Part shown: positions 47,501 through 64,000 of the stretch, in pieces | Position numbering within the stretch: the first letter of the stretch is position 1 | Layout: every line of letters begins with the position of its first letter | Assembly (NCBI RefSeq): GCF_003918875.1 | Contig: NW_025767021.1 | Location: 124,001-188,000, forward strand | From: Haliotis rubra | Taxonomy: Eukaryota | Length of the DNA: 64,000 nucleotides | Direction: 5' to 3' | The notes under the pieces: model-generated | The model's database searches: none | What the model was told of the DNA's origin: nothing | The model's input: only the letters and a program-made list of their open reading frames with translations | Made by a program: the position numbers and the translations under genes

Positions 47501-50500
47501 TCTGCTGAGTAAGCTGCTGCATGAAGATACCCGGGTTGAAATTCTGCGACGACAGCTGCTGCTGCTGCAAAGATGACGACGCATCTGAAAGTGCTGAGGC
47601 TTCTTCCAAGGAACGCTGTGCTTGTGAAGAACTGCCGCCTCTGGTATCTGATGTCTGCGTTGATAGAACGTCTGACTGCATTGAGATGACTGCTGACGTC
47701 ACTGTAGAAGAAGATCTCGTCTTTTTCTTAACTGCTACGTCAGGAATGAGGATGGTTGGCTCGTCATATACGTCTACTTCGTCTGAAGGGATGATCTCTG
47801 CAGCGAAGGACCTCGTCTTCTGCGCTGCCCCATGGGAAGACTTCGCCGAAGTCTTATCTGCAGACAACTTCTTTTTCTGAGAAGACGATGCCCTGGTCTT
47901 CTTAGACTGCGATGAGGCTACTACTGACATTGATGACCTCTTCCTGGAGCCGGAGCTTCCATCTGCCACAGCAACATGCTCCGTAGGACAGCAATAAACG
48001 GTTATCAGCGCAATCACTCGATTTAGACATGACTTGTAAAAGCCGTCTAGACCTGTCCTTGGCACATCTAAGAATGGAATATAAATAATTATTAAATTCA
48101 ATTTCAGATAAATGCTGACAAAGTTGACAGCGTAAGCTGGAAGAACATGTAGAAGTACAATTAGGACATAATAAATGCGGATCAGCAACCGACAACCGGT
48201 ATCTGCAATGACTGCAAGTTTTCATCAAATGTAAACAAGATGAAATATCATGTCAACAACGTGGATAAACAGATAATTTAGACAAATATTTCAAACCATA
48301 TCGCTGGTATATCTTCTTAAATGCTGTATACAGCTAATTTAGTGGTAAAGGCCTAAAAATAAAAGGATATAGTGCCGTATAGGGGACCGAGGCGCTCTCA
48401 CAACCGTCCTCTAGGGCGAAGAAGGAGAGAGTGAAGAGCGTGTTTGGTCATGTGACAGATTTTGCCAACAAAATACCTAAGGGAGGTAACACTGGGTGAG
48501 TGATTTTACGTCCGCTTTTTTTAAGGGAGCTTCAAAAGGGGATTCAAGTGTTTCTCTATCATTCGCAAGAAGAAGGAGACAAGCAATTAAGTATGAGTAC
48601 GGATAAGGAAATATTATGTCGTTTTCTGATTGGCTGAGCGTTCTTCTATTATTTTCAATGTACCCTGCGTACAAGCGAGTAACATTTTCTATGTACCCCG
48701 CTGGGAATGCTGAACTCATTAGGTACTTCGTAGTAGTAAGTCTTTATCTCGAATAACATTGAATCACGTATGATGTACCTAAATTACCGATGTTTTGCAA
48801 ATGCAAATTGATGGAAGGGAGATAACTCTAAATTTGTATTTCTTGTCATCTTGTTGTCTGGTACTCAATACTATGATCCAATACCCGTGCTTCAAACAGT
48901 TCAAAATTATCATTGAGATGTTCGGTAAGATGAATATGTTGTTCACTGGTCCCTCGGGGCCCATGTGTTGATCTACCCTCAATGTTTCTCAGGGAACATA
49001 AACAAACATCAAGGGTACATCAGCCCATGTCCCCCTCAAGACCAGTGAACGCAAAATTGTCCTATGATACACGAAACTTGGCAAACCCTACAGCCTTAAC
49101 CGTTAACATATCAAATGGGTCAAATCAGCACCCAACATACAAAGTGCATAACACTGTCTGTGAGTTCTTAAATTATCTCGCTGTTGGGGGTAGAGGATGT
49201 AAAAGTTTCAACTCAGTCCAGTGATTTCAAAATGTCCTTTAATCTCAAGTTCCGAGCTTTCTTACTACACTTCTTCACAATCCAATCCACACAATGACAG
49301 AATAACAGTACCTAAACGTTAATTTAACAGTGACTAGACAATGTCTAGGCAATTAATGCACAGTGGCTGGACAGGTTGAAAAACCGTATGTCCTCTAAGC
49401 CCACAACACACAATTCTATAACACTCTCTTAGAAACTTAAAAACATGTCTTACTGCTTCAGTATCTTAAAGCTCTCTGTCCCTTTCTCACACTCTTTCAT
49501 TCCACATGTGTCGCTTAAATTCTTGGTCGGCCACTTATCGTGGTTGATCAGGTCAGAACCCATAGGACCCCAAGAAGACAATTAGTCTATAAGTCTTAGT
49601 TGCAGTGGTAAATCACAGCTGCCACCAGTCCTGTGAATGTAGCCTCGGGACATTTGCTGGCAGCAGGGGCTGGCAGATTCTTATGTCTCGACTAATATCT
49701 ATATACTAAGCACATGCAGCCTCTCACACACAAACCCTAACAAAGTTACAAATATAATATTTTGCATGTACAGCAAATGCCTAAAATTCGGCTCTAACAT
49801 TCCAGCCCCTAATTGTTACTTATATCTGAATGTAACAATTACCATGAAATTATATAGAGCGAATTTTTTACTTTAAACAATGTCATCCTAAGCTACATTA
49901 GTTGACTTAACAACTAGACGTTATAACAGTGGACATTCTCTCTGAGTTATAATCTTAGTATATTACAGTATGCAAGAACTAATCGAACATATTAGTCGAT
50001 GCTCTTCGTCTTAACTTCAGATTCGTTACAAGTTACAGTCTCAAAACACAGTTTAAGTGTCACTCTCAAGAAGCAAGCACAGCTTGCTGATTGGTCTGTC
50101 CAAAACCTTTGTCTGGGTTTTCACTTCGACACGTCTAACAACACCCTTTCTATCTGGCATAAGCTTCACAACTTTGCCCATTGCCCAGGAATTTCTAGGT
50201 GCTGTATTGTCCACTATGAGCACGATGTCACCAATCTTCAAATTTCTTCTTATCTTCACCCACTTCTGTCGTTCTTGTAGTAATGGCAGATACTCTCTTA
50301 ACCATCTCTTCCAGAACAAATCCGCCATATACTGCACTTGGCCACCGACGCCTTGGATATGAACCACCCAAGTCAGACATACCCGGCGGCAAATTCGGTT
50401 TTCTCTTCATGAGCAGCAAGTGATTTGGAGTGAGTGCTTCCAAATCATTTGGGTCACTTGATGCTTTGGATATAGGTCTATTGTTAACAATAGCCTCTAT

Positions 50501-53500
50501 CTCACACAGCACTGTTCGTAAGGTTTCATCGTCCAAAGTTTGTTCTCTTACGAGTGATCTTAATACCTTCCTCACAGTTCTGATTTGTCGCCTCCCACAC
50601 GCCACCATGGTGGGAACCTGTCGGAGGATTGAATGTCCATTCAATACTTCTTTGTAGCATCTCTTGTTGAATCTGACATTTGTTCCATTTCTCAATTTCT
50701 TCCCTTAACTCACGCTCACTTCCAAACGGTTGGTGCCATTATCTGATCTGATGACTTTCACTTGACCTCTTCTAGCGATGAAACGAGCGCAGTGCATTTA
50801 TACAAGAGTCAGTGTCTAAACTATGTGCCACTTCTATGTGCACTGCACGTGTTGTAAGGCACGTGAACAAAACTCCAAATCTTTTTTCGTGCTTTCTTCT
50901 GCATTTTACGTCGAATGGACCAAAGTAATCCACTCCAACAAAGGTGAACGGAGGTTCATCGGGAGTCACACGGTGAGCAGGCAAGTCAGCCATCTTTTGA
51001 TTACCTGCTTCAGCATGGGTACGCCAGCAAGTCACGCATCTGTGTAGTTCTTGTCTCACTGCTGCATTGGCTTTGATAATCCAATATTTCTCAAACAATT
51101 TTGAAAGTACAAAATATCTGCCTGAATGTCCACACTCATGATGGATGTGGCGAATTATCAGTTCTGACACATGAGATTTCTTTGGTAGAATCACTGGGTG
51201 CATCGCGCTCTCTGGCATGTTGGCCCTACTTAAACGTCCACCCACTCTAATATACCATCTTCTACAAATGGGTCAAGCTTGGAGATTGGACTGCCTTTGC
51301 TCAGATTAAGTCCATTGTTTGAGGTTAGTCTTTCAAGCTCACTTGAAAAGTTCTGCTGTTGAACATACCGAATAATGGCTTTCTCTGATTCTTCCAATTC
51401 TTTTACTGTCAACACGACAGGCTTCCTTTTCTGTGGTGTTAAACCTGCCTTCTTCATTTTACTCCGATCTAGGAGTACTTCCCGTATCCTGAGTACCCAT
51501 GCAATAGCCTTCTTCAGAGCAAACCAGTCCGAATAGTGACTGATAAGGCTATCTACTTCTTTGCATGGCTTTCTGTAGTCTATCTGGTTGACCTGGGCAA
51601 CCTTCCTTAGTTCCACATCTTTCGATGGAATGTCAGTTGAAATGTGTGTCTGTTGGGGCCACATTTCTTCATTTTCCCATAAGAACTCTGTTCCAGAAAT
51701 CCATCTGGTATCTTTCAGAAATGCATCTATTGACAGTCCTCGAGATGCTTTCGTCTGTGGGATTGTTTTGAGTATCCACATATTTCCATTGTGATGGGAC
51801 TGACCCTTCATGAATCACTGATAGCCTATTTGCTACAAAGGTGTGGAATCGCTTTGAATCATTGGCGATGTATCTTAAAACTGACATGCTGTCTGTCCAG
51901 AAGTAGGTTTGATCAACTGAAATCTCCAGCTCACGTTTGAGCATGCTGTCCACTCGTATTGCTAAAGTCGCAGCTGATAGCTCCATTCTTGGGATTGTGA
52001 TGGTCTTAAGTGGAGCAACTCTAGACTTGCTAATAAGAAATGAGCAATTAACTTGTCCAGTGGTACTGACTTGTCTTAAATAGGAAACAGTTCCATAACC
52101 CTTTTGACTGGCATCTGAGAAGTGGTGTATTTGGGATATTGCATTCTGATCACTATCCTTGGGTTGAATGCACCTTCTTATCTTCATTTCCTCAAGCCTT
52201 TGTAGTTCTGACAACCATTTGGTCCAGTCTTTCTGGGACGGAATAGGAATGACGTCGTCCCATCCTATCTTAAGTCTGGAAAGGTCTTGTAGAATGCCCT
52301 TTGCTTTGAGAACAAAAGGACCTGCAAATCCCAGTGGATCATATATGGAGCTGACAGTTGACAGAATACCTCTTCTCGTTACTGGTTTGTCTTTGACTGC
52401 TATCCTGAACTTAAATGTGTCTGATTCGACACACCATTGTACACCTAATGCCCTCTCCACTGGCAAGGCATCATCTATGTCTAAGTCTTTAACTTCTTTG
52501 GCTCGATCCTCTTCTGGGATTGAGTTTATTGCAGCTCTGCTGTTACTTATCCATTTTGTCAAACGGAATCCACCTTTACTGCAGATTTCTCTCAGTTTCT
52601 GTGACATCTCAATCGCTATTTCGTCAGACGCGACTGACATGAGACAGTCATCCACATAGAAACTCTTTTCAAGGGCATGGGTCACATTGTTGCTAAACAT
52701 GTCCTTGTTGTCTTTTGCTGTTTCTTTCAGTGCAAAGTTGGCACAAGTTGGTGAAGAGACAGCGCCAAACAAGTGCACTTTCATCTGATATTCCTGTAAT
52801 TCTTCATCGAGATTTCCATTGGGCCACCAAAGGAATCTTAGAACATCATAATCATCTGGTTCAACTCTGACCTGGTAAAACATGGCTTCAATGTCCGCCA
52901 TTAGAGCTATTGGTTCTTGGCGAAATCTCAGGAACACTCCAATTAAGGCATTGGTGAGATCCGGCCCCTGTAGCAGGTGGTCATTTAGTGATTTTCCTCT
53001 GTATTCTGCTGCACAGTCAAATACTACTCTTATCTTATCTGGTTTCTTTGGATGGTATACACCATGATGTGGTATGTACCACACCTTCCCATCCTGACGA
53101 TCTTTCTTACTCTCGGGAACCCTTTGGGCATAATCTTTGTCTAGGAGATCCTTCATAAAGCCTTTGTAATCTCTGTAGAAATCATCATTCTTCAGAAACT
53201 TCTTCTTAAGCGAAATGGCTCTTTCTTTGGCCTGTATTTTATTGTTTGTAATTTGATTTTGGAATCTTTGAATGGCAGAGACATCTGGTAGTGTCCTCCT
53301 GTTAATCTCTTGGATGAGTTCATTATATCCAAGAAATGCTGATCATTTCTTGACAGTTCTTCTTTATCATTGCTGAGGCCCTCGTTAAATTCTCTGTGGA
53401 AGTATCCTCTCAACTGATGATCAAGGGACTCATCTGCTAGAACATCAGTTCTGTTGACTGAGATCTTGCTGGGAGATTCAGATTCCTGGACAAGCCCATT

Positions 53501-56500
53501 TACCATCCAGCTAAGAATCGTTCTTACAGCATAGGGTCCGTTACCATGACTGTTGACTATTTCCAGGGGTTCCAATGCCATAGGTACATTGTTGCCTATT
53601 AGCAGCCCTATCTCTGCATCTATAGGTGGTAGTGTGACGTCCCATAGATGCGGCCATTGATGAATGAACTCTTCTTTGGGAATAGTGCTTGTGGAAATAG
53701 GCATTTCATCCTGTGTGAATACTGTAGGTAATTTGATCCAGTTCCTTCCATGGATGTCACCTACTTCTAGGTTTGTTAGAATGGAGGTATTCACAGACTT
53801 CTTTTGAGTCATGGTGCTGACAACTATATTTGTCATCTTCCCTGTGACATGAAGCTCGTCAGCCAACCTGCTTGTGCAGAAGGTTGCTGAACTGCCGTTG
53901 TCAAGGAAGGCATATGTCTTTACATATCTGTCCCCAGTGCCGACTTTGATTCTAACAGGAACTACAGGCATATAGCTCAAGTCTTTGAGATCTTCACTGT
54001 GACGTGTAGCCAAACTGTTGTTTGTTACAACCTTTTGGCCCGTCTGATCCTTTTCCTTCTTTAGTTTATCTTTATTGTTGTCATGGAAACACGTTGCATG
54101 TCTCATTTTGCAGATATGACAGGTCAATCTGCTGGGGCACTGGCGACTTGTGTGTCCGAACTGTAGACAGCCAAAACACAATCCCTTTGGTCTTAGAAAG
54201 TCAATTTTTTCATCCAGTGTCTTACACTGAAGTCTTATGCACATTTCCATACAGTGATCCTCGTCGCAGAACCAGCATGGCTTGGCGAATGCCCTCAAAG
54301 CTCTCTCTCGTGCTGTGAATGGCTTACTTTGTGTCTCATGAATTCGCGATTCAGATTTCGATGTATCAGTGGCAAAGCTCTTAAATCTCTTAGGTGCTTC
54401 TTTCGGGTTAGGCTTTGGTTGAGCTTGTCTGTCGTCGGCAATTGTGCCAAACAGTGGACTCGACAGTATCTGTGCTTGTCTATCCACGAAACGAGCAAGG
54501 TCTGCAAAGGTGACATTTCTTCTTTCCAAGATATCAAATGAAACTGCCCTCCATCTTTCTCTTAATTTGTATGGCAACTTTTGAATCAGTTCCCTGAGGT
54601 TTTTGGGATGTTCTAATTCTCTCATGTACTCTATATCTGCCATGGTATTTCCACAACTTGTCAGGAATATAGAAAAGCTGGTCAGTGCATCACTGTCTTC
54701 TGACTTTATAGCTGGCCATTTCAAGGCTTTGTCCATGTAAGCTGCTGCAAGCTTGTATTTGTTCCCAAATTTCTTATCCAACAATGACCTGGCTTGTTCA
54801 TAACCACTTTCCGGATTCATGTGAATACAGCTTCTTACCAAGTCATTTGGTTCACCGCTGGTGTACTGGTCCAAGTAATAGAGTCTATCCTTGGGATTAA
54901 TGGTCTTGTCTTCTATAGCATGTTCAAAAGCTCTTATGAAAGGCTTAAATTGTAATGGGTCGCCACTAAACGTAGGTATTTTCCTAAAGGGTAGACTGGC
55001 TAGCTTCTGGTGTTCTACCACAAGCTGCATTATTTCATTCTGTTGTTTACACACTTCATCGAAGTGTGTATTGCTGACTCCAGCTGGTGAGCTTGTGTTC
55101 TGGTTCAGGGTGAATTCTCTTGCAAGTGGATTCAACACTTCATTTCGGCTATTTGATGGGTTGAAGGACTTTTGGGGATGATCTTTCTTTTGCGAACCGT
55201 TAGATTCTTGGTCATATTGGTCAAAAATTGCATACTGAGCATTTGCGATTTCCACTTCTGTCTCAAGTTCTAATCTTTCTCTCCTTTGTTTTAACCTGTT
55301 CTCTTCTTCTTCCAGTTGATGCTTTTGCTCTAATCCTTTCTGTCTAGCAACAAGTTCGGCCCTTTTTGCCAAGATTTCCATTTTAGCAGAGGAGGCAGAT
55401 GATATGACTGAACCCTTACGTGTCCCGACTTGCGAAACGCTATCTTCAGGCCTTATTTCATTTTCTGTATCACAGGGTTTAATAAACGAAGCAACATTTG
55501 TCTCAAACTGTACTAAGGCACCTAACTGTGACTGGAACCAGGCTTCGTCTTCCTCTTTCGCTGATTGACTTTCAAGTTTATTGTGATAAGTTTCAGCCGA
55601 TTCTTTAAATTTCAAAAATAGCTCTTTCCATTCTTGAAACTCAATTTTTACATCATCCAGAGCGTCAGAGCTCATCAAGTATTCAATGTAGTTTACCTTT
55701 GAACACACTTGTTTATACAGGAATTTTCTTTTTTCCAATGCTGTATTCAAATTATAGCTTTGGCCCTTTTCCGTTGGTTTTCTTATTCGTGATTCTGTTA
55801 TCACAGATTTAGCATTTCTCCTAAGCTCATGAGTCAGTCCTTTATCACTGTGAACAGTATCGCTCAATGTTCTGCTTGCCATGGTGAAAAATTAGTCGAA
55901 CAGTTCGAATAATCTTGAAATAACTTACAGTTCTTGAATTCCTTAATCCTAAATGAACACACAGTTCCAATGAAATATAATCCCTCCTGTTTCTGAATAA
56001 ATACTTGAACATGTGGTCTTCTTAAATCCTGTTAGCACATCCTTGAACACATATCAGTTCCATTTGCTTGACAAGCTCAATCTTCTTTAAGAAAAACTAA
56101 ATGAATAACTTACTTCAGCTTTGAGTCCTCAATCCAGTTTGCGTTAATCCATTTTGATGATTGCACAATTCTTCCGCACAAAATTCTTTGTCCAAGTCTT
56201 AGGTTCACATCCGGGTTTTCACGGGTTTTTCAACTTTGAATGTGAGTTCTTAAATTATCTCGCTGTTGGGGGTAGAGGATGTAAAAGTTTCAACTCAGTC
56301 CAGTGATTTCAAAATGTCCTTTAATCTCAAGTTCCGAGCTTTCTTACTACACTTCTTCACAATCCAATCCACACAATGACAGAATAACAGTACCTAAACG
56401 TTAATTTAACAGTGACTAGACAATGTCTAGGCAATTAATGCACAGTGGCTGGACAATAGCTGGACAGTGGCTGGACAGGTTGAAAAACCGTATGTCCTCT

Positions 56501-59500
56501 AAGCCCACAACACACAATTCTATAACACTCTCTTAGAAACTTAAAAACATGTCTTACTGCTTCAGTATCTTAAAGCTCTCTGTCCCTTTCTCACACTCTT
56601 TCATTCCACATGTGTCGCTTAAATTCTTGGTCGGCCACTTATCGTGGTTGATCAGGTCAGAACCCATAGGACCCCAAGAAGACAATTAGTCTATAAGTCT
56701 TAGTTGCAGTGGTAAATCACAGCTGCCACCAGTCCTGTGAATGTAGCCTCGGACATTTGCTGGCAGCAGGGGCTGGCAGATTCTTATGTCTCGACTAATA
56801 TCTATATACTAAGCACATGCAGCCTCTCACACACAAACCCTAACAAAGTTACAAATATAATATTTTGCATGTACAGCAAATGCCTAAAATTCGGCTCTAA
56901 CACTGTCTATTGGAGCATGTTGTAACACAGCTGCAGAAAGACCTAAGTACTGACCTGAAGATGACGGACTGCTATTCCTGGACCGTGCGCAAGGGGAGTG
57001 GGCAAAGTGGCATCATCTCCAGTGAGCAAGTCACCCTCGTCTGGTACATGAGAAACGGAAAGTCAACTCATAGTGAAATAAACTGAAAACATATCACTTC
57101 ATAATTGATGTTTGATATACTTGGTATACTCGTCCTCAATAATCAGTCGAACTAAACATTGTCATTTCATCACATATATTTCAACAGACATACTAACAGT
57201 TAACAGTAGGAGGATAACTCCCTCTAATTGACCAATTACATCATTGTAACCTTGATTGATGACATAATATCAAAGTCACAACAAAGGGGAGATCACTCTC
57301 ATTTCACCTCATTTCTAGTACTTTCCACACAACAAATAACAGTGGCTCAATATTTCACAAGATTTGTTTGGAGCTTAATACAAAAATATTAAAACATATT
57401 TTTGAGTGCCTCCCTATCTGAAACATGTTAGAATATTATTTTCTTAGTATTTTAACTAAAATTTCACTTGTAACATGAAAATGCACAATTGCATACAAAT
57501 CATGCCATTATCCGCTGGACTACAGAAAGAATGACACACTTGATAAACTCTTCCTCAATAATCAGTCGAACTAAACATTGTCATTTCATCACATCAGTTA
57601 ACAGTAGGAGGATAACTCCCTCATACAAAGCCATGGTTGCTGCCATTAAAGGAAATGGCATCAGCTCCAGGTTCAAGCTAATCAAGCATTTCATGGACAC
57701 CCTTTCAAAGTAAGAAAGACTACAACAACATTCTTCATCCTAGAGGCTTAGACATATTTTGAATCAGCTATGAGGGTTGACTTGGTACCCACCATCATCC
57801 ATGACATAGTCCATGGCAGGCATGCTGAAATCATCTCCCAGCAGACTGTTGGAGAACTGATTGTAGAGAGCTGTCGTGTTGAGTGCACACATCTTCAGCT
57901 CCTTTTCAATGACATCACGCCAGTCCGGAGTGCACAATCTCACTCGAATGGTCTCTCCATTGACCTGGTGCTGGTCCAGAGCCTGGGCCTCAAGGGCAGC
58001 GTCCCCACTCTTGTAGATGATCCACATGTCACTGCCCACAAACCTGTGTGAATGGACACCAAATATTCCTGTTACACAACTGGTAATGAGATACATCCAT
58101 TCTGCTGACGTATTGTACATTGTAAACTTATACAAGGAAAAGTACAAAATGACACCTAACGATATGATACATTTTTTTCATTTTAGTTCATCTTAGTTCA
58201 ACATTGACCACAATCTGCTGGTGGCTGGATTACTGTTCAAGAAAGAATATTGTAAACAATGTCTGCATGAGTGATGAGTCTTGTTCATGAGTGAGTGAGT
58301 GAGTCCACACTCAGCAATATTGATGTTGTTTCACAAACCCACCTGACGACTGTGACGTCTCCAATCTCAGTGAAGGTGCTGACCACTTGGTCTATAATCT
58401 CATCATCAAACTCTGCCCCCGATGCCAGAGACACGATGACAGTGCCATCTGGTGGTCCCTGTTGAGCAACAACTTCGTGCATCACCTTCTCCTTGCAAGC
58501 CTCGTCAACTGCCAGCACGTCAATGTCCAGGAGGGCCAGCACAGGCCTGAATCAGAGAGCAGAGATAGCACCTGTCTCTATGGACATTGGGTAATACTTG
58601 TGTGTAGTCCATGGATAACTCAGAAATGTCATTCAAGAAGCTAAAAATAGCACTAAAACAGCACCAGAGAGTAGTATCATCACTACGGTTTGTTTCATTT
58701 CAGCTCCTGTATATCATCCCATATATGGCAAGTTAGTTTTTTGTACCTAAAATTAAGAGGGGTTTAAAGAGGGAAGCAATATATGGTAGTTGGTGTCAAC
58801 TTTAATAAAACAAATAGACATGAAGAAAACCTTCAGCCCAGTAAGCTGTCCACATAAAGGAAACAATGATTGCTGAAGAAATGCTTAGCCTCTGAAAACA
58901 TCTCCATGTAAATTAAAAATGTGCCCTTGTGATAACCCTAAACATGAGTCAAATGTAGACTTGTTTCATTTTGGGTTTGTGCATTACAGAAAGGGCCGGT
59001 GGAAGAGAAACAAGTGTGGTTCTGGGTCTGAGACAATCAATGTGTAGCTGTTACCTGTGATCTGATGTCTTCAACTCCGCCCGATCATACAATATCAACT
59101 TCCCCTCACTCCAGCTCGGGTCATCTTCCTCCTCTGTAGCAGAAAACCATGTTATAACCTTATGGTGTTCAAATAAAATAGATTATTTGGAACCAAAATA
59201 TTAGGCTTAATAATATTGGATTGATGTAAGCAGATAGGATAATTCACCATGTGTTATTTTTTCTATTATTGTTTTCTGTAAAGCTTGTAACACTTAGTCA
59301 CATGTGCATGTCAATAATTTTAGTTTAAGCATCTACACACTCACACACCTGCAGTTTTACCATGTACACCCTCACATACCTGCAGTTTTACCATCCACAC
59401 ACACACACACACACACCTGCAATATCACCATGTGCACCCTCACACACACCTGCAGTTTTACCATGTACACCCTCACACACACCTGCAGTTTTACCATTCA

Positions 59501-62500
59501 CAAACACACCTGCAATATCACCATGTACACCCTCACACACCTGCAGCTTTATGATGTACACCCTCACACACACCTATAGTTTTACCATCCACACATGCAC
59601 ACCTGCAATATCACCATGTACACCCTCACACACACCTGCAGTTTTACCATGTGCACCCTCACACACACCTGCAGTTTTACCATGTACACCCTCACACACA
59701 CCTGCAGTTTTACCATTCACAATCACACACCTGCAATATCACCATGTACACCCTCACACACACCTGCAGCTTTACAATGTACACCCTCACACACACCTTG
59801 AGGTTTTACCATGTACAACTTCACACACACCTGCAGTTTTACCACCTACACTCTCACACACACCTGCAGTTTTACCATCTACACCCTCACACACACCTGC
59901 AGTTTTAGCATTGAGACTCTCACACACCTGCAGTTTTACCATGTACACCTTCACACACACCTCCAGTTTCAGTATCTACACCCTCACACACACCTGCAGT
60001 TTTAGCATGTAGACTCTCACACCCACCTGCAGTTTTACCATCTACACCCTCACACACACCTGCAATTTTAGCATGTAGATTCTCACACACACCTGCAGTT
60101 TTACCATGTACACCCTCACACACACCTGCAGTTTTTCCATGTACACCCTCATACACATACATGCAGTTTTACCATGTACACCTTCACACACATACATGCA
60201 GTTTTACCATGTACACCCTCACACACATACATGCAGTTTTACCAACTACACCCTCACACACCTGCAGTTCTACCATGTACACACTCACACACATACATGC
60301 AGTTTTACCATGTACAACCTCACACATACCTGCAGTTTTACCAACTACACCCTCACACACCCCTGCAGTTTCACCATGTACACCCTCACACACATACATG
60401 CAGTTTTACCATGTACACCCTCACACACACACACACCTGCAGTTTTACCATCTACACCCTCACACACATCTGCAATTTTAGCATGTATACCCTCACACAC
60501 ACCTGCAGTTTTACCATGTACACCCTCACACACACACACCTGCAGTTTTACCATGTACACCCTCACACACACCTGCAGTTTTACCACGTACACCCTCACA
60601 CACCCCTGCAGTTTTACCATCCACACAGTGACATCTCCAGCTATATGTCTACTCTCTTAGATGGCTGAACATCTACACTAAGACATCTGAAGCTGTACAT
60701 CTTCACTAAGACATCTGAAGCTGTACATCTACACTAAGACATCTGAAGCTGTACATCTACGCTAAGACATCTGAAGCTGTACATCTACACTAAGACATCT
60801 GAAGCTGTACATCTACACTAAGACATCTGAAGCTGAATCTCTACACTAAGACATCTGAAGCTGTACATCTACACTAAGACATCTGAAGCTGTACATCTAC
60901 ACTAAGACATCTGAAGCTGTACATCTACACTAAGACATCTGAAGCTGAACATCTACACTAAGACATCTGAAGCTGTACATCTACACTAAGACATCTGAAG
61001 CTGTACATCTACACTAAGACATCTGAAGCTACACAACTACACTGAGACATCTGAAGCTGTACATCTACACTGAGACATCTGAAGCTGTACATCTACACGA
61101 AGACATCTGAAGCTGTACATCTACACTAAGACATCTGAAGCTGTACATCTACACTAAGACATCTGAAGCTGAATCTCTACACTAAGACATCTGAAGCTGT
61201 ACATCTACACTAAGACATCTGAAGCTGTACATCTACACTAAGACATCTGAAGCTGTACATCTACACTAAGACATCTGAAGCTGAACATCTACACTAAGAC
61301 ATCTGAAGCTGTACATCTACACTAAGACATCTGAAGCTGTACATCTACACTAAGACATCTGAAGCTACACAACTACACTGAGACATCTGAAGCTGTACAT
61401 CTACACTAAGACATCTGAAGCTGTACATCTACACTAAGACATCTGAAGCTGTACATCTACACGAAGACATCTGAAGCTGTACATCTACACGTAAGACATC
61501 TGAAGCTGAACATCTACACTAAGACATCTGAAGCTGTACATCTACACTAAGACATCTGAAGCTGTACATCTACACGAAGACATCTGAAGCTGTACATCTA
61601 CATTAAGACATCTGAAGCTGTACATCTACACTAAGACATCTGAAGCTGTACATCTACACTAAGACATCTGAAGCTGTACATCTACACTAAGACAACTGGA
61701 GCTGTACATCTACACTAAGACATCTGAAGCTGTACATCTACACTAAGATATCAGAAGCTGAACATCTACACTAAGATATCAGAAGCTGTACATCTACACT
61801 AAGACATCTGAAGCTGAATCTCTACACTAAGACATCTGAAGCTGTACATCTACACTAAGACATCTGAAGCTGTACATCTACACTAAGACATCTGAAGCTG
61901 TACATCTACACTAAGATATCAGAAGTTGAACATCTACACTAAGACATCTGAAGCTGTACATCTACACTAAGACATTTTAAGCTGTACATCTACACTAAGA
62001 CATCTGAAGTTGTACATCTACACGAAGACATCTGAAGCTGTACATCTACACTAAGACATCTGAAGCTGTACATCTACACTCACGCTCTCTTGGTAGGAGG
62101 TGTTTACGCCTCCAGAGCACCCGGTCTGTCCATGCTGGTGTGCGAGACTTCTCACTGGTGTCGTAGTCATCACTGAACAGATCATACTTGTAGGTAGGTG
62201 CGAAATTGGTCTTCCCCTCACTGAATCCAGCAAACCCCTACACAACAAGTACACATACAGACACATCATTCTTGACCAATCTAAACATCAGTCCTGGCAA
62301 TTCCAATGAGAGCAATTGGAATGCAAGTGTTTCCATGAAACTACAACTGACTGACTGAGTTTTGGTTTTATGCCGCTTTTAGCAATATTCCAGCAACATC
62401 ACGGAGGGGGACACCAGATATGGGCTTCACACATTGTACCCATGTGGGGATTCGAACCCGGGTCCTCGGCGTGACGAGCCAACGCTTTAACCACTAGGCT

Positions 62501-62930
62501 ACCCCACCGACCCATGAAACTACAAGCAAAAGAATTTAATTCATGATAGGTACACATTAGACTTGTTTCAAATGAATTTTCTTTCCAAGGCATGTATAAA
62601 AACCTTTTGTTGTTTGACTTTAGTGGGTTTTACACCATTTTAGCAATATTCTTATAATATCATTGCTGGGGACATCAGGAACAGGCTTCTCAAACTGTGC
62701 TCATCTTGGGGATGAGCAGACACTTTAAACACTATTCTACCATACTGCCCCTGAACTCACTGAAAACTTACCTTGCCCTCCGCCCGTTGTACATTAAGTT
62801 GGTCATAGTGCTGCAGGGCTGCCCAGTTCTCACTGCGGACGAGGTCCTTCACCTGCTCTATGTCCATGTCGATGCGGTAGTTGAAGTCTCCGCACCAGAA
62901 CACGTAGTCGTGACTAGAGATAGTCCGGCC
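38531..62930 (-). CDS. SYNJ1: Synaptojanin-1: 3' part (end of inositol 5-phosphatase domain, RRM-like domain, proline-rich tail); gene begins right of the window
   Basis: Exons 62930-62772, 62237-62084, 59133-59055, 58546-58343, 58043-57793, 57040-56955, 42053-41806, 41242-41128, 40581-40478, 40105-39940, 39609-38531. Motifs [67 protein letters not shown]. One apparent 1-nt deletion in exon 57040-56955. Confidence 0.94.
39772..39862. mobile_element. Miniature/remnant DIRS termini
   Basis: aaattgatattttatacttatcctgactcatg is identical to the DIRS left end (42639-42670). After 15 nt comes catgagtcaggataaggaaa, resembling the right end (48592-48611). Confidence 0.75.
40640..40775 (+). mobile_element. 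SINE-like family B, diverged 5' part
   Basis: tgaagatgcggttagaatttgtcttcagcaacccatgcttgtc...gactaacagga...gactcgctgacttggt. Confidence 0.75.
42074..42343. repeat. ~28-bp G-rich minisatellite next to a SYNJ1 acceptor
   Basis: Unit gagtggctgggtgggtggatatttcagt, about 8 copies. Confidence 0.92.
43152..44224 (-). pseudogene. DIRS tyrosine recombinase, frameshifted
   Basis: [43 protein letters not shown] (catalytic Arg), PHAVRALA (HxxR) and VFANHYL (catalytic Tyr), spread over several frames. Confidence 0.88.
44202..46040 (-). pseudogene. DIRS pol (RT, RNase H, adenine methyltransferase-like), frameshifted
   Basis: [28 protein letters not shown], out-of-frame VYLDD at ~45440, [57 protein letters not shown]. 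Confidence 0.9.
46100..48228 (-). pseudogene. DIRS ORF1/gag-like, frameshifted
   Basis: N-terminal Cys/His cluster CSHC...DPHLLCPNC...[10 protein letters not shown], then Ser/Arg-rich low-complexity ORF pieces upstream of pol. Confidence 0.7.
49159..49799 (-). repeat. BEL 3' LTR (641 bp)
   Basis: Direct repeat of 56241-56902. Confidence 0.96.
50053..55882 (-). pseudogene. BEL/Pao gag-pol polyprotein split by about five frameshifts
   Basis: Gag with triple Cys/His knuckles ([40 protein letters not shown]), protease [16 protein letters not shown]...RVVFDCAA...FYVDD, RNase H HHFSDAS, integrase HHCC...GVDYFGP...AVHIEV, C-terminal RPISKLCLL. Confidence 0.95.
56241..56902 (-). repeat. BEL 5' LTR (662 bp)
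   Basis: By eye it differs from the 3' LTR only by a 22-bp duplication (~56456-56477) and a 1-bp indel. Confidence 0.96.
59330..60625. repeat. ~33-bp CA-rich minisatellite in a SYNJ1 intron
   Basis: Unit cctgcagttttaccatgtacaccctcacacaca, about 39 copies. Confidence 0.95.
60666..62080. repeat. 28-bp minisatellite, ~50 copies, abutting a SYNJ1 donor
   Basis: Unit tctacactaagacatctgaagctgtaca (period 60721 to 60749). Confidence 0.97.
62347..62511 (-). mobile_element. tRNA-derived SINE family A
   Basis: Reverse copy with intact A and B boxes; 14-bp TSD ccatgaaactacaa. A more decayed copy follows at ~62620-62750. Confidence 0.9.
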
Positions 62931-63646
62931 CTGCAATACACACTAATCTTACACCATTCGCAAAACACACTAGTCTTACACCAGACATATATAGTCGAGC
63001 CCTTCCATACACAGTGATCCTGAACCTAACACACGTGTAATCTGGTCTGCAATACAGACTTGTTTCAATAAAGTAGGTATGGAAGGAGAGTGATAAGCTG
63101 TAACTATATAATAATGTTGTTGCCGTGAATGGCAGTTGTCAGAACACAGCCTCTAAATGATTCAATAACTACTGTTACTATTATCTCAAAACATTCAAGT
63201 TTTTCCATGTGGTTTAATATTTGGTACAGATTTTGGTTTTCCATCAGTAAAACATACACAGAAGGGAGCAAGAAATACACCAACTCAGGTTATCAAACTC
63301 ACCAAGCCATTAAATTTTAACCTTTTCCTGAAGTAGTTGTTAAGCTTGTTCTTGCAATGAATTCTAATATTTTACTCACATGAAGGCATCTATAGTTTGT
63401 CAAATACTGGTCACCTTCACCTCTGAGGCCTGTGTTTTCATACCCCCTAGATACAGAGTGTATGGCCAAAAGAGGTCATCTGATACATTAACAGTAAGTT
63501 TTCTATCAACTTACAACATATATACAGAAGGATGCAATATGCATTACTTCCATCATGCAACCACATCATCCAACATCTATCCACAACGTCTGTTGTGTAA
63601 CCATAATCCCCAACCTTTAGACATGGTGTCTGTCATGAAACACAAT

Positions 63647-64000
63647 GCCTGTCATGTAACCGTGATGTCTGTCTGTCGTGTAACCATACTGCCTGTCACG
63701 TAACCATGATGCCTGTCATGTAACCATGATGCCTGTCGTGTAACCATGATGTTTGTCTGTCGTGTAACCATACTGCCTGTCATGTATCTGTGATGCCTGT
63801 CATGTAACCATGATGCCTGTCGTGTAACCATGATGTCTGTCTGTCGTGTAACCATACTGCCTGTCATGTATCTGTGATGCCTGTCATGTAACCATGATGC
63901 CTGTCGTGGAACGATGATGCCTGTCGTGTAACCATGATGGCTGTCATGTAACCATATTACCTGTCATGTAACCATGCTGCCTGTCATGTAACCATGATGG
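63647..64000. repeat. ~20/24-bp minisatellite, runs off the window
   Basis: Unit ccatgatgcctgtcatgtaa with variants. Confidence 0.93.

Follow-up and report, generated by a model that had tools for sequence, protein, structure and literature searches.

How does a retrotransposon of the BEL/Pao superfamily start reverse transcription when the site at which a host tRNA should anneal is missing? This question is raised by an element of the abalone Haliotis rubra, which lies on the minus strand at positions 49159-56902 of a 64,000-nt stretch of contig NW_025767021.1 (hereafter the window, to which all positions refer). According to the Belpaoviridae profile of the ICTV, the international body for virus taxonomy, members of this group carry an 18-nt primer binding site (PBS) for a host tRNA-Arg or tRNA-Gly, and the host tRNA acts as primer (PMC8742986). 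The window element carries at this position, next to its 5' long terminal repeat (LTR), a segment complementary to a stretch inside that LTR. Such a pairing, with co-varying sequences, recurs in about two dozen related families whose hosts range from molluscs to a brittle star, and it suggests that reverse transcription is self-primed in this lineage. We consider self-priming similar to that of the Tf1 retrotransposon the best explanation for this BEL/Pao lineage, and on the whole a probable one.

Read on the minus strand, the 5' LTR ends with ...AACTCACA and is followed by the 6-nt spacer TTCAAA (56235-56240), by GTTGAAAAACC and by CGTG. The segment GTTGAAAAACC occupies 56234-56224, beginning 6 nt after the LTR end, which was set at 56241 by LTR alignment. 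It is the exact complement of GGTTTTTCAAC (56489-56479), a sequence present in both LTRs (the 3' LTR copy lies at 49375-49385). Over the wider LTR stretch ACGGTTTTTCAACC (56491-56478), 13 of 14 positions pair with one bulge, where CCC on the PBS side faces GG on the LTR side. The PBS position reads GTTGAAAAACC(C)GT (56221-56234), and the LTR site reads ACGGTTTTTCAAC (56479-56491), the candidate self-primer and presumed start of the repeat region R of the LTR. TGG was not found directly after the LTR, the nearest one lying about 45 nt downstream, and neither the sequence nor a search with the 21 nt that follow the LTR reveals an 18-nt tRNA site of the ICTV type. The preliminary description of this stretch had claimed both the lack of a tRNA-type site and the complementarity of the 11-mer, and our analysis bears it out on both.

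Several observations set this pairing apart. The 11-mer occurs three times in the window, once per LTR and once as reverse complement at the PBS position, with 0.03 occurrences expected, and an equally good match to the LTR arose in only 2 of 500 shuffles of the 30 nt after the LTR. In the window element, it is the only notable feature next to the LTR end, and it is there that a primer must anneal, because that position defines the LTR end. Furthermore, the block GATTGTGTGTTGTGGGCTTAGAGGACATACGGTTTTTCAACC is nearly invariant among the copies of the family, including those whose LTRs are only 75% identical overall; in this comparison, the candidate primer site is the most conserved block of the LTR.

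The genome (1.38 Gb) contains at least 760 matches to the Pao peptidase from many families. We sampled 25 places in the genome, which stand for about 21 distinct families, taking from each its 5' and 3' ends as pieces of 1.7-2.1 kb, and defined the LTR of each family by aligning its two end pieces. For family C2195 the 5' piece stopped within the LTR, and for C2374 no LTR was found in the end pieces examined. Relatives at about 50-62% identity have the polypurine-tract motif of the window element and lack the TGG site. Paired segments in these relatives and in other animals are 9-18 nt long and start 2-12 nt after the LTR, and the LTR partner site lies 112-475 nt before the LTR end in the related families. 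In several relatives the ATG of gag follows within 17-46 nt, which leaves no space for another PBS.

The paired sequences differ between families and co-vary. The sister family C446 (62% amino acid identity) combines GTTGAAAACC with GGTTTTCAAC, a helix one A:T pair shorter than that of the window element, with the change on both sides and in both LTRs. C1101 has GTTGAAAAACC itself at the PBS position, and its exact complement is the copy with a run of five T in the C1101 3' LTR. C291 carries GTTCAGAAAA at the PBS position and TTTTCTGAAC in the LTR, and the pairs of C1590 and C913 are variants of this one; the corresponding sequences are GTTCAGAGAAA and TTTCTCTGAAC in C1213, and ATTGACATTAATAT and ATATTAATGTCAAT in C2592, where none of 500 shuffles did as well. 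Three families have a 2-nt bulge on the LTR side, given here in brackets: C1713 with CATTATTTTGGGTA and TACCCAAAA[AA]TAATG, C2612 with CATTGTTAGAC and GTCTAA[AA]CAATG, and C2312 with CATTACTAGAC and GTCTA[AA]GTAATG. In C2349, 17 of 18 positions pair, and further differing family pairs are GTCAACAAAAAG/CTTTTTGTTGAC and GTCTAAAAACAAT/ATTGTTTTTAGAC.

The same arrangement is met outside H. rubra. Haliotis cracherodii possesses the same family, with a pairing of 13 bp and the spacer TTAAAA. The layout is also the same in the oyster Ostrea edulis (CAATTCAGAAG/CTTCTGAATTG) and in an element of another assembly, L103 (GTCAAAAAACTG/CAGTTTTTTGAC). Two circular Logan contigs have pairings of 12 and 13 bp; in the Logan contig L099, compared with L098 and L103, the order of parts is the standard one, namely LTR end (CCACA), spacer (TTTA) and paired segment. 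In the brittle star Amphiura filiformis, GTACAAAAAACT pairs with AGTTTTTTGTAC, a helix prolonged by three more pairs, and none of 300 shuffles did as well. For the elements from Ptychodera (L096) and Oncorhynchus (L097), no LTR pair was found within 8 kb.

The covariation was assessed by a permutation test in which each post-LTR segment was scored against each LTR. With 15 elements, none of 20,000 permutations reached the observed sum of the fits of segments to their own LTRs; with 21 elements, none of 100,000 did, and the result held when close relatives were dropped. In addition, we aligned 12 gapless helices from the end presumed to be the 3' end of the primer. These helices had been chosen for pairing, which makes their paired fraction uninformative and leaves the diversity of pair types as the informative quantity; single helix positions carry three or four different Watson-Crick pair types. 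The LTR sites of all 12 end in AC or AT, and each PBS-position segment has GT or AT as its first two bases. Ranking sites by RNAduplex scans that allowed large loops was defeated by noise. The preliminary description had named a lack of complementarity between PBS and LTR in related BEL families as a result that would speak against it; the families pair, and the pairing is kept by compensatory change. Altogether, the pairing lies at the place where a primer has to anneal, and it is conserved and co-varies across many families and several phyla.

A comparison within the same genome is provided by four BEL families that carry a classic PBS, TGGTAGCAGAGCGTGG, 0-3 nt after the LTR end and show no complementarity to the LTR (C210 at locus L069, C496 at L073, C2730 at L071 and L092, and C370 at L067 and L091). 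Across reverse transcriptase and peptidase, one of the four shares no more than 38% identity with the window element. The site TGGTAGCAGAGCGTGG presumably fits the 3' end of the initiator tRNA-Met and not that of tRNA-Arg or tRNA-Gly. The window element resembles canonical BEL/Pao elements in gene content, LTRs, target-site duplication and polypurine tract, but it and its lineage differ from them, including these four families, in having no tRNA-type site.

Which role the pairing might play is suggested by Tf1, whose mRNA anneals by its own 5' end to the PBS, where a cut then yields the primer; this mechanism is well founded for Tf1, and Tj1 and the sushi group are inferred to share it (PMC4600332). 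Tf1 and Tf2 of S. pombe, Tj1 of S. japonicus and the vertebrate sushi elements resemble the lineage described here in that they lack a tRNA PBS and have about 11 nt near the 5' LTR that are complementary to an LTR segment. In both cases the pairing closes a loop formed by R and the adjoining U5 region, and in the Tf1 group the LTR segment is the mRNA 5' end (PMC4600332). The Tf1 group, however, consists of Ty3/Gypsy chromoviruses in which the complementary segment is directly adjacent to the LTR, whereas the present elements are BEL/Pao with a Pao A17 peptidase and a spacer of 2-12 nt, and in some of their families the helix is bulged or ends at a splice-donor motif. Moreover, both the transcript start and the cleavage are predictions in the case of the BEL/Pao element. 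Self-priming has likewise been predicted from sequence for the TAR lineage of Ty1/copia (Houba, Osr-1) and for plant Tcn1 chromoviruses (PMC6317226). The evidence for those elements is purely computational, as is ours; they belong to other superfamilies and hosts, and here covariation across families and phyla is available as well.

By analogy with Tf1, the genomic RNA of the window element would begin with ACGGUUUUUCAAC or a little ahead of it, and would fold back with this 5' end across R-U5 (about 250 nt) onto GUUGAAAAACC(C)GU. A cut in the RNA where the duplex has its 3' end, after ...CAAC, would then free a 3'-OH to prime minus-strand DNA, with the spacer copied first, followed by U5 and R. 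We infer from the same analogy that the LTR site would be the 5' end of the RNA and that the RNA would be cut there and act as primer; the same is true of the cutting enzyme and of the choice between priming in cis and in trans. The self-priming reading, already put forward in the preliminary description, has gained the covariation between PBS and LTR in related families, yet it continues to lean on Tf1.

The arrangement of poly(A) signals is consistent with such a transcript. Among 12 LTRs surveyed, AATAAA and ATTAAA occur exclusively downstream of the LTR site, the 140-540 nt upstream being free of them. In the window element, ATTAAA (56320-56325), the sole canonical poly(A) signal of the LTR, is located 164 nt downstream of the site; in C446, C1101, C291, C2592 and Amphiura the distance is 15-73 nt. 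This layout fits an LTR site at the start of R, and these five elements would then possess an ordinary short R. When the RNA was folded from the site to the PBS, the closing helix was part of the minimum-free-energy structure in 12 of 12 elements, with pairing probabilities of 0.80-0.99, a result that is favoured by the choice of the 5' end at the site. A TATA-like TATAGAA (56518-56524) is found about 35-36 nt upstream of the first G of the paired site, and a TATA-like motif is also present about 36 nt upstream in C2592.

A number of observations weigh against self-priming or against parts of the evidence for it. The preliminary description had used TATAGAA as an argument for the transcript start; the motif is indeed there, but as evidence it is weak, as most other copies of the family read TATAGG, TGTAGG, TGTAAG or TGTATG, H. 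cracherodii reads GTAAGAAGA at this position, and a TATA at the expected distance is missing from most related LTRs. The fold of the whole R-U5 region is no more stable than that of shuffled sequences (z = -0.79). A single search of sequencing runs turned up no RNA run with this stretch; three runs guessed to be RNA yielded a few contigs of 200 nt at depth 3-4, which are probably DNA because they also cover the flank outside the element. The pol region of this copy is fragmented, being split over several short open reading frames (ORFs). Families C846, C209 and C1097 pair weakly or not at all, and the pairing was not seen in Mytilus L101 and Carassius L094, where the LTR boundaries are doubtful. 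A criterion developed for plant self-primers asks for at least 10 bp that are complementary to the 5' LTR and start 0-5 nt after the LTR (PMC6317226). The window element has at least 10 nt complementary to its LTR, and the start at 6 nt exceeds the permitted distance by one; in relatives the spacer is 2-12 nt. Moreover, the motif GT[AG]AG after the LTR site in six families and the AA bulge in three are not predicted by simple Tf1-like priming.

These last motifs deserve a closer look. In six families, the LTR site is directly followed by GTAAG, GTAGG or GTGAG, which agree with the 5' splice-site consensus: C1713 (L063), C2612 (L081), C2312/C890 (L083 and L118), C403 (L110), C258 (L112) and the element of Ostrea edulis (L095:4645-4665). 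Examples, with a slash between site and donor, are ..AATG/GTAAGCC, ..TTG/GTGAGT and ..TTT/GTAAGT. The families with this motif also have an acceptor-like YnAG, located either where the LTR ends or shortly ahead of or within the paired segment, and for C1713, C2612 and C2312 the poly(A) signal, 33-52 nt ahead of the LTR end, falls within the putative intron. In the same three families (L063, L081 and L083), the AA bulge on the LTR side is no assembly error, because both LTR copies show it identically. The donor and acceptor motifs, the AA bulge and the pyrimidine tract described next are all absent from the window element and its closest relatives. Directly before the LTR site, a pyrimidine tract with TAG or CAG occurs in C291 (L089), C913 (L104), C1213 (L106), C1590 (L114) and C2312b (L120), as in TTTTGTTTCTCCTTTATAG directly followed by TTTCTCTGAAC; the tract resembles a 3' splice site, or may belong to a core-promoter block that is conserved. 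In C403 (L110), the first 22 nt after the LTR form a small hairpin, GTTCAA-GAAAAT-TTGAAC. Judging from the donor and acceptor motifs, the pairing may additionally act in splicing or in poly(A) control in part of the lineage.

Could the pairing, then, have a role other than priming? Long-range stems beside the PBS are known from retroviruses and Ty1: the U5-leader and U5-IR stems of the former and the CYC5-CYC3 pairing of the latter are conserved long-range RNA pairings around the start of reverse transcription. It is therefore conceivable, though unlikely, that the helix of the BEL/Pao lineage is such a conserved stem between LTR and leader, with a function in the control of a 5' untranslated-region intron, in control of LTR polyadenylation, in packaging or dimerisation, or in gag translation, and that the real primer is something else. 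The LTR site ending exactly at GT[AG]AG in six families, the acceptor-like YnAG near the LTR end and the poly(A) signal within the putative intron of C1713, C2612 and C2312 (the three surveyed that have a canonical signal) would all suit a stem of this kind. Yet the U5-IR and CYC5-CYC3 stems flank a PBS to which a tRNA is bound, whereas here the paired segment itself occupies the PBS position. No donor motif follows the site in the window element, C446, C1101, H. cracherodii, C2592, C291, Amphiura, L103, L098 or L099, and these donor-less elements still need a primer, with nothing else adjoining the LTR. The predicted spliced junctions of C2612 and C2312 were not found in genome DNA, which says little either way. 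Self-priming and splicing could also be combined: across the multi-phylum BEL/Pao lineage, in molluscs, echinoderms and other marine animals, self-priming would have replaced the tRNA, and in the sub-lineage with splice motifs the 3'-OH of the primer would come from cleavage at the 5' splice site or from coupling to intron splicing, and not from RNase H. Coupled splicing would, in that case, remove the intron that carries the LTR poly(A) signal. We regard this combination as improbable. Hardly better placed is the proposal that the same duplex primes but that the primer is the copy of the site in the 3' R, or the site of a second, co-packaged RNA, to which we give a small probability. The site is present in both LTRs, the PBS of C1101 is matched exactly by its 3' LTR copy, and cis and trans look alike at the level of sequence; in Tf1, though, the primer is the mRNA 5' end (PMC4600332), and a 3' copy would precede the rest of R and the poly(A) tail and need the same cleavage.

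That a host molecule is the primer, namely a tRNA fragment or another small RNA, the match to the LTR being secondary, appears very improbable. Half-tRNA primes copia, and the first 8 nt after the LTR presumably resemble the complement of the anticodon loop of tRNA-Gln(UUG). The A/T-rich segments, however, differ between families and yet each matches its own LTR, and for this reason a single host RNA cannot explain them; moreover, those BEL families in this genome that do use a tRNA have an ordinary TGG... site. A search of the genome with the 21 nt after the LTR, allowing up to 3 mismatches, found no tRNA-like multicopy locus; apart from a 178-bp satellite and isolated single sites, only copies of the element matched. 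Within the window, ARAGORN detected no tRNA. A genome search with the tRNA model RF00005 gave 321,282 candidates; 63 of these were scored, and the best hits were partial (positions 7-64). To the detriment of self-priming, this leaves short tRNA fragments with some probability. The satellite, spaced at 178 bp on contigs C1305, C2332 and C823, contains TTCAAACTTGAAAAACCCATG, which has 2 mismatches to the post-LTR 21-mer, a likeness that is probably a coincidence. The sheer number of first-look candidates for the tRNA model (about 321,000, even the best covering only model positions 7-64) suggests a very large population of tRNA-derived short interspersed nuclear elements in this genome. Finally, a chance match in A/T-rich sequence might be invoked, as the 11-mer includes a run of five T and low-complexity matches exceed a uniform expectation. 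With only 0.03 occurrences expected and the pairing recurring with different sequences in about two dozen families, this has practically no probability left, and the permutation tests reject it.

To our knowledge, the Tf1 group of Ty3/Gypsy is the only one for which self-priming has been demonstrated. Our literature search found no paper linking BEL/Pao with self-priming, although older papers on Suzu and BEL-like elements were beyond its reach and may contain a prior description; surveys of BEL/Pao in the searchable literature do not discuss PBSs. If Tf1-like self-priming is indeed used by this lineage, the mechanism would have arisen or been kept in all three superfamilies of LTR retrotransposons. 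It would explain that annotation tools seeking a tRNA PBS miss or misjudge these elements, and it would make the transcript start of many LTRs predictable from sequence alone. The elements would also be freed from dependence on host tRNAs and from silencing based on tRNA fragments. The splice-site motifs beside the primer site raise the separate question of how the poly(A) signal of the 5' LTR is handled.

The remaining structure of the window element is that of a BEL/Pao retrotransposon, a class that follows from the Pao A17 peptidase, reverse transcriptase, integrase and DUF1759 gag found by Pfam and that agrees with the earlier assignment. All features are on the minus strand. The 5' LTR (56241-56902, 662 nt) and the 3' LTR (49159-49799) both run from TGTTAG to CTCACA, with the TG..CA ends expected of this superfamily, and the whole is bordered by the target-site duplication GACAG (56903-56907 upstream and 49154-49158 downstream in the orientation of the element), within the usual 4-6 bp; these limits come from alignment of both LTRs and their flanks. 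Between the LTRs lie a gag-like ORF of 896 amino acids with a DUF1759 domain (53192-55882), an ORF of 495 amino acids with reverse transcriptase (RVT_1) and Pao peptidase (Peptidase_A17, 1.6e-49) at 51669-53156, and an ORF with a fragment of the zinc-binding integrase domain (Integrase_H2C2) at 50772-51245. The polypurine-tract region AATTAGGGGCTGGAA (49800-49814), whose motif is common to the related families, immediately precedes the 3' LTR. The closest proteins are of the Pao type, with the best match (88%) in H. cracherodii. Membership in the Tf1/sushi group of Ty3/Gypsy, which would call for a Gypsy-type pol with a retropepsin and a chromodomain integrase, is contradicted by the Pao-type peptidase.

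The insertion is young, as the two LTRs differ by only a 1-nt indel and a 22-nt indel, the latter in a TGTCCAGCCAC tandem, and by nothing else. The extra 22 nt of the 5' LTR (56441-56477 compared with the region of 49370) belong to this tandem, which directly follows the candidate primer segment, and the LTR of H. cracherodii has a similar tandem at the corresponding place, CTACTGTCCGAG. Four other LTR copies in the genome (L024, L026, L028 and L030), about 75-78% identical to the window LTR, all continue with AATGAATTTCATGTATTTTTAG...; segmental duplication, insertion into another repeat, or a non-autonomous relative whose leader differs may account for them. Beside the element, the flank is matched by contigs of runs X1 and X2 as far as 56954, where they pass into other sequence (56954-57000), and the deep DNA run X5 has no contig over 56936-57000; the flank may vary between individuals. 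Farther on, the last 4.7 kb of the window (59333-64000) are occupied by long arrays in which short units of about 33, 28 and 20 nt are repeated in tandem.

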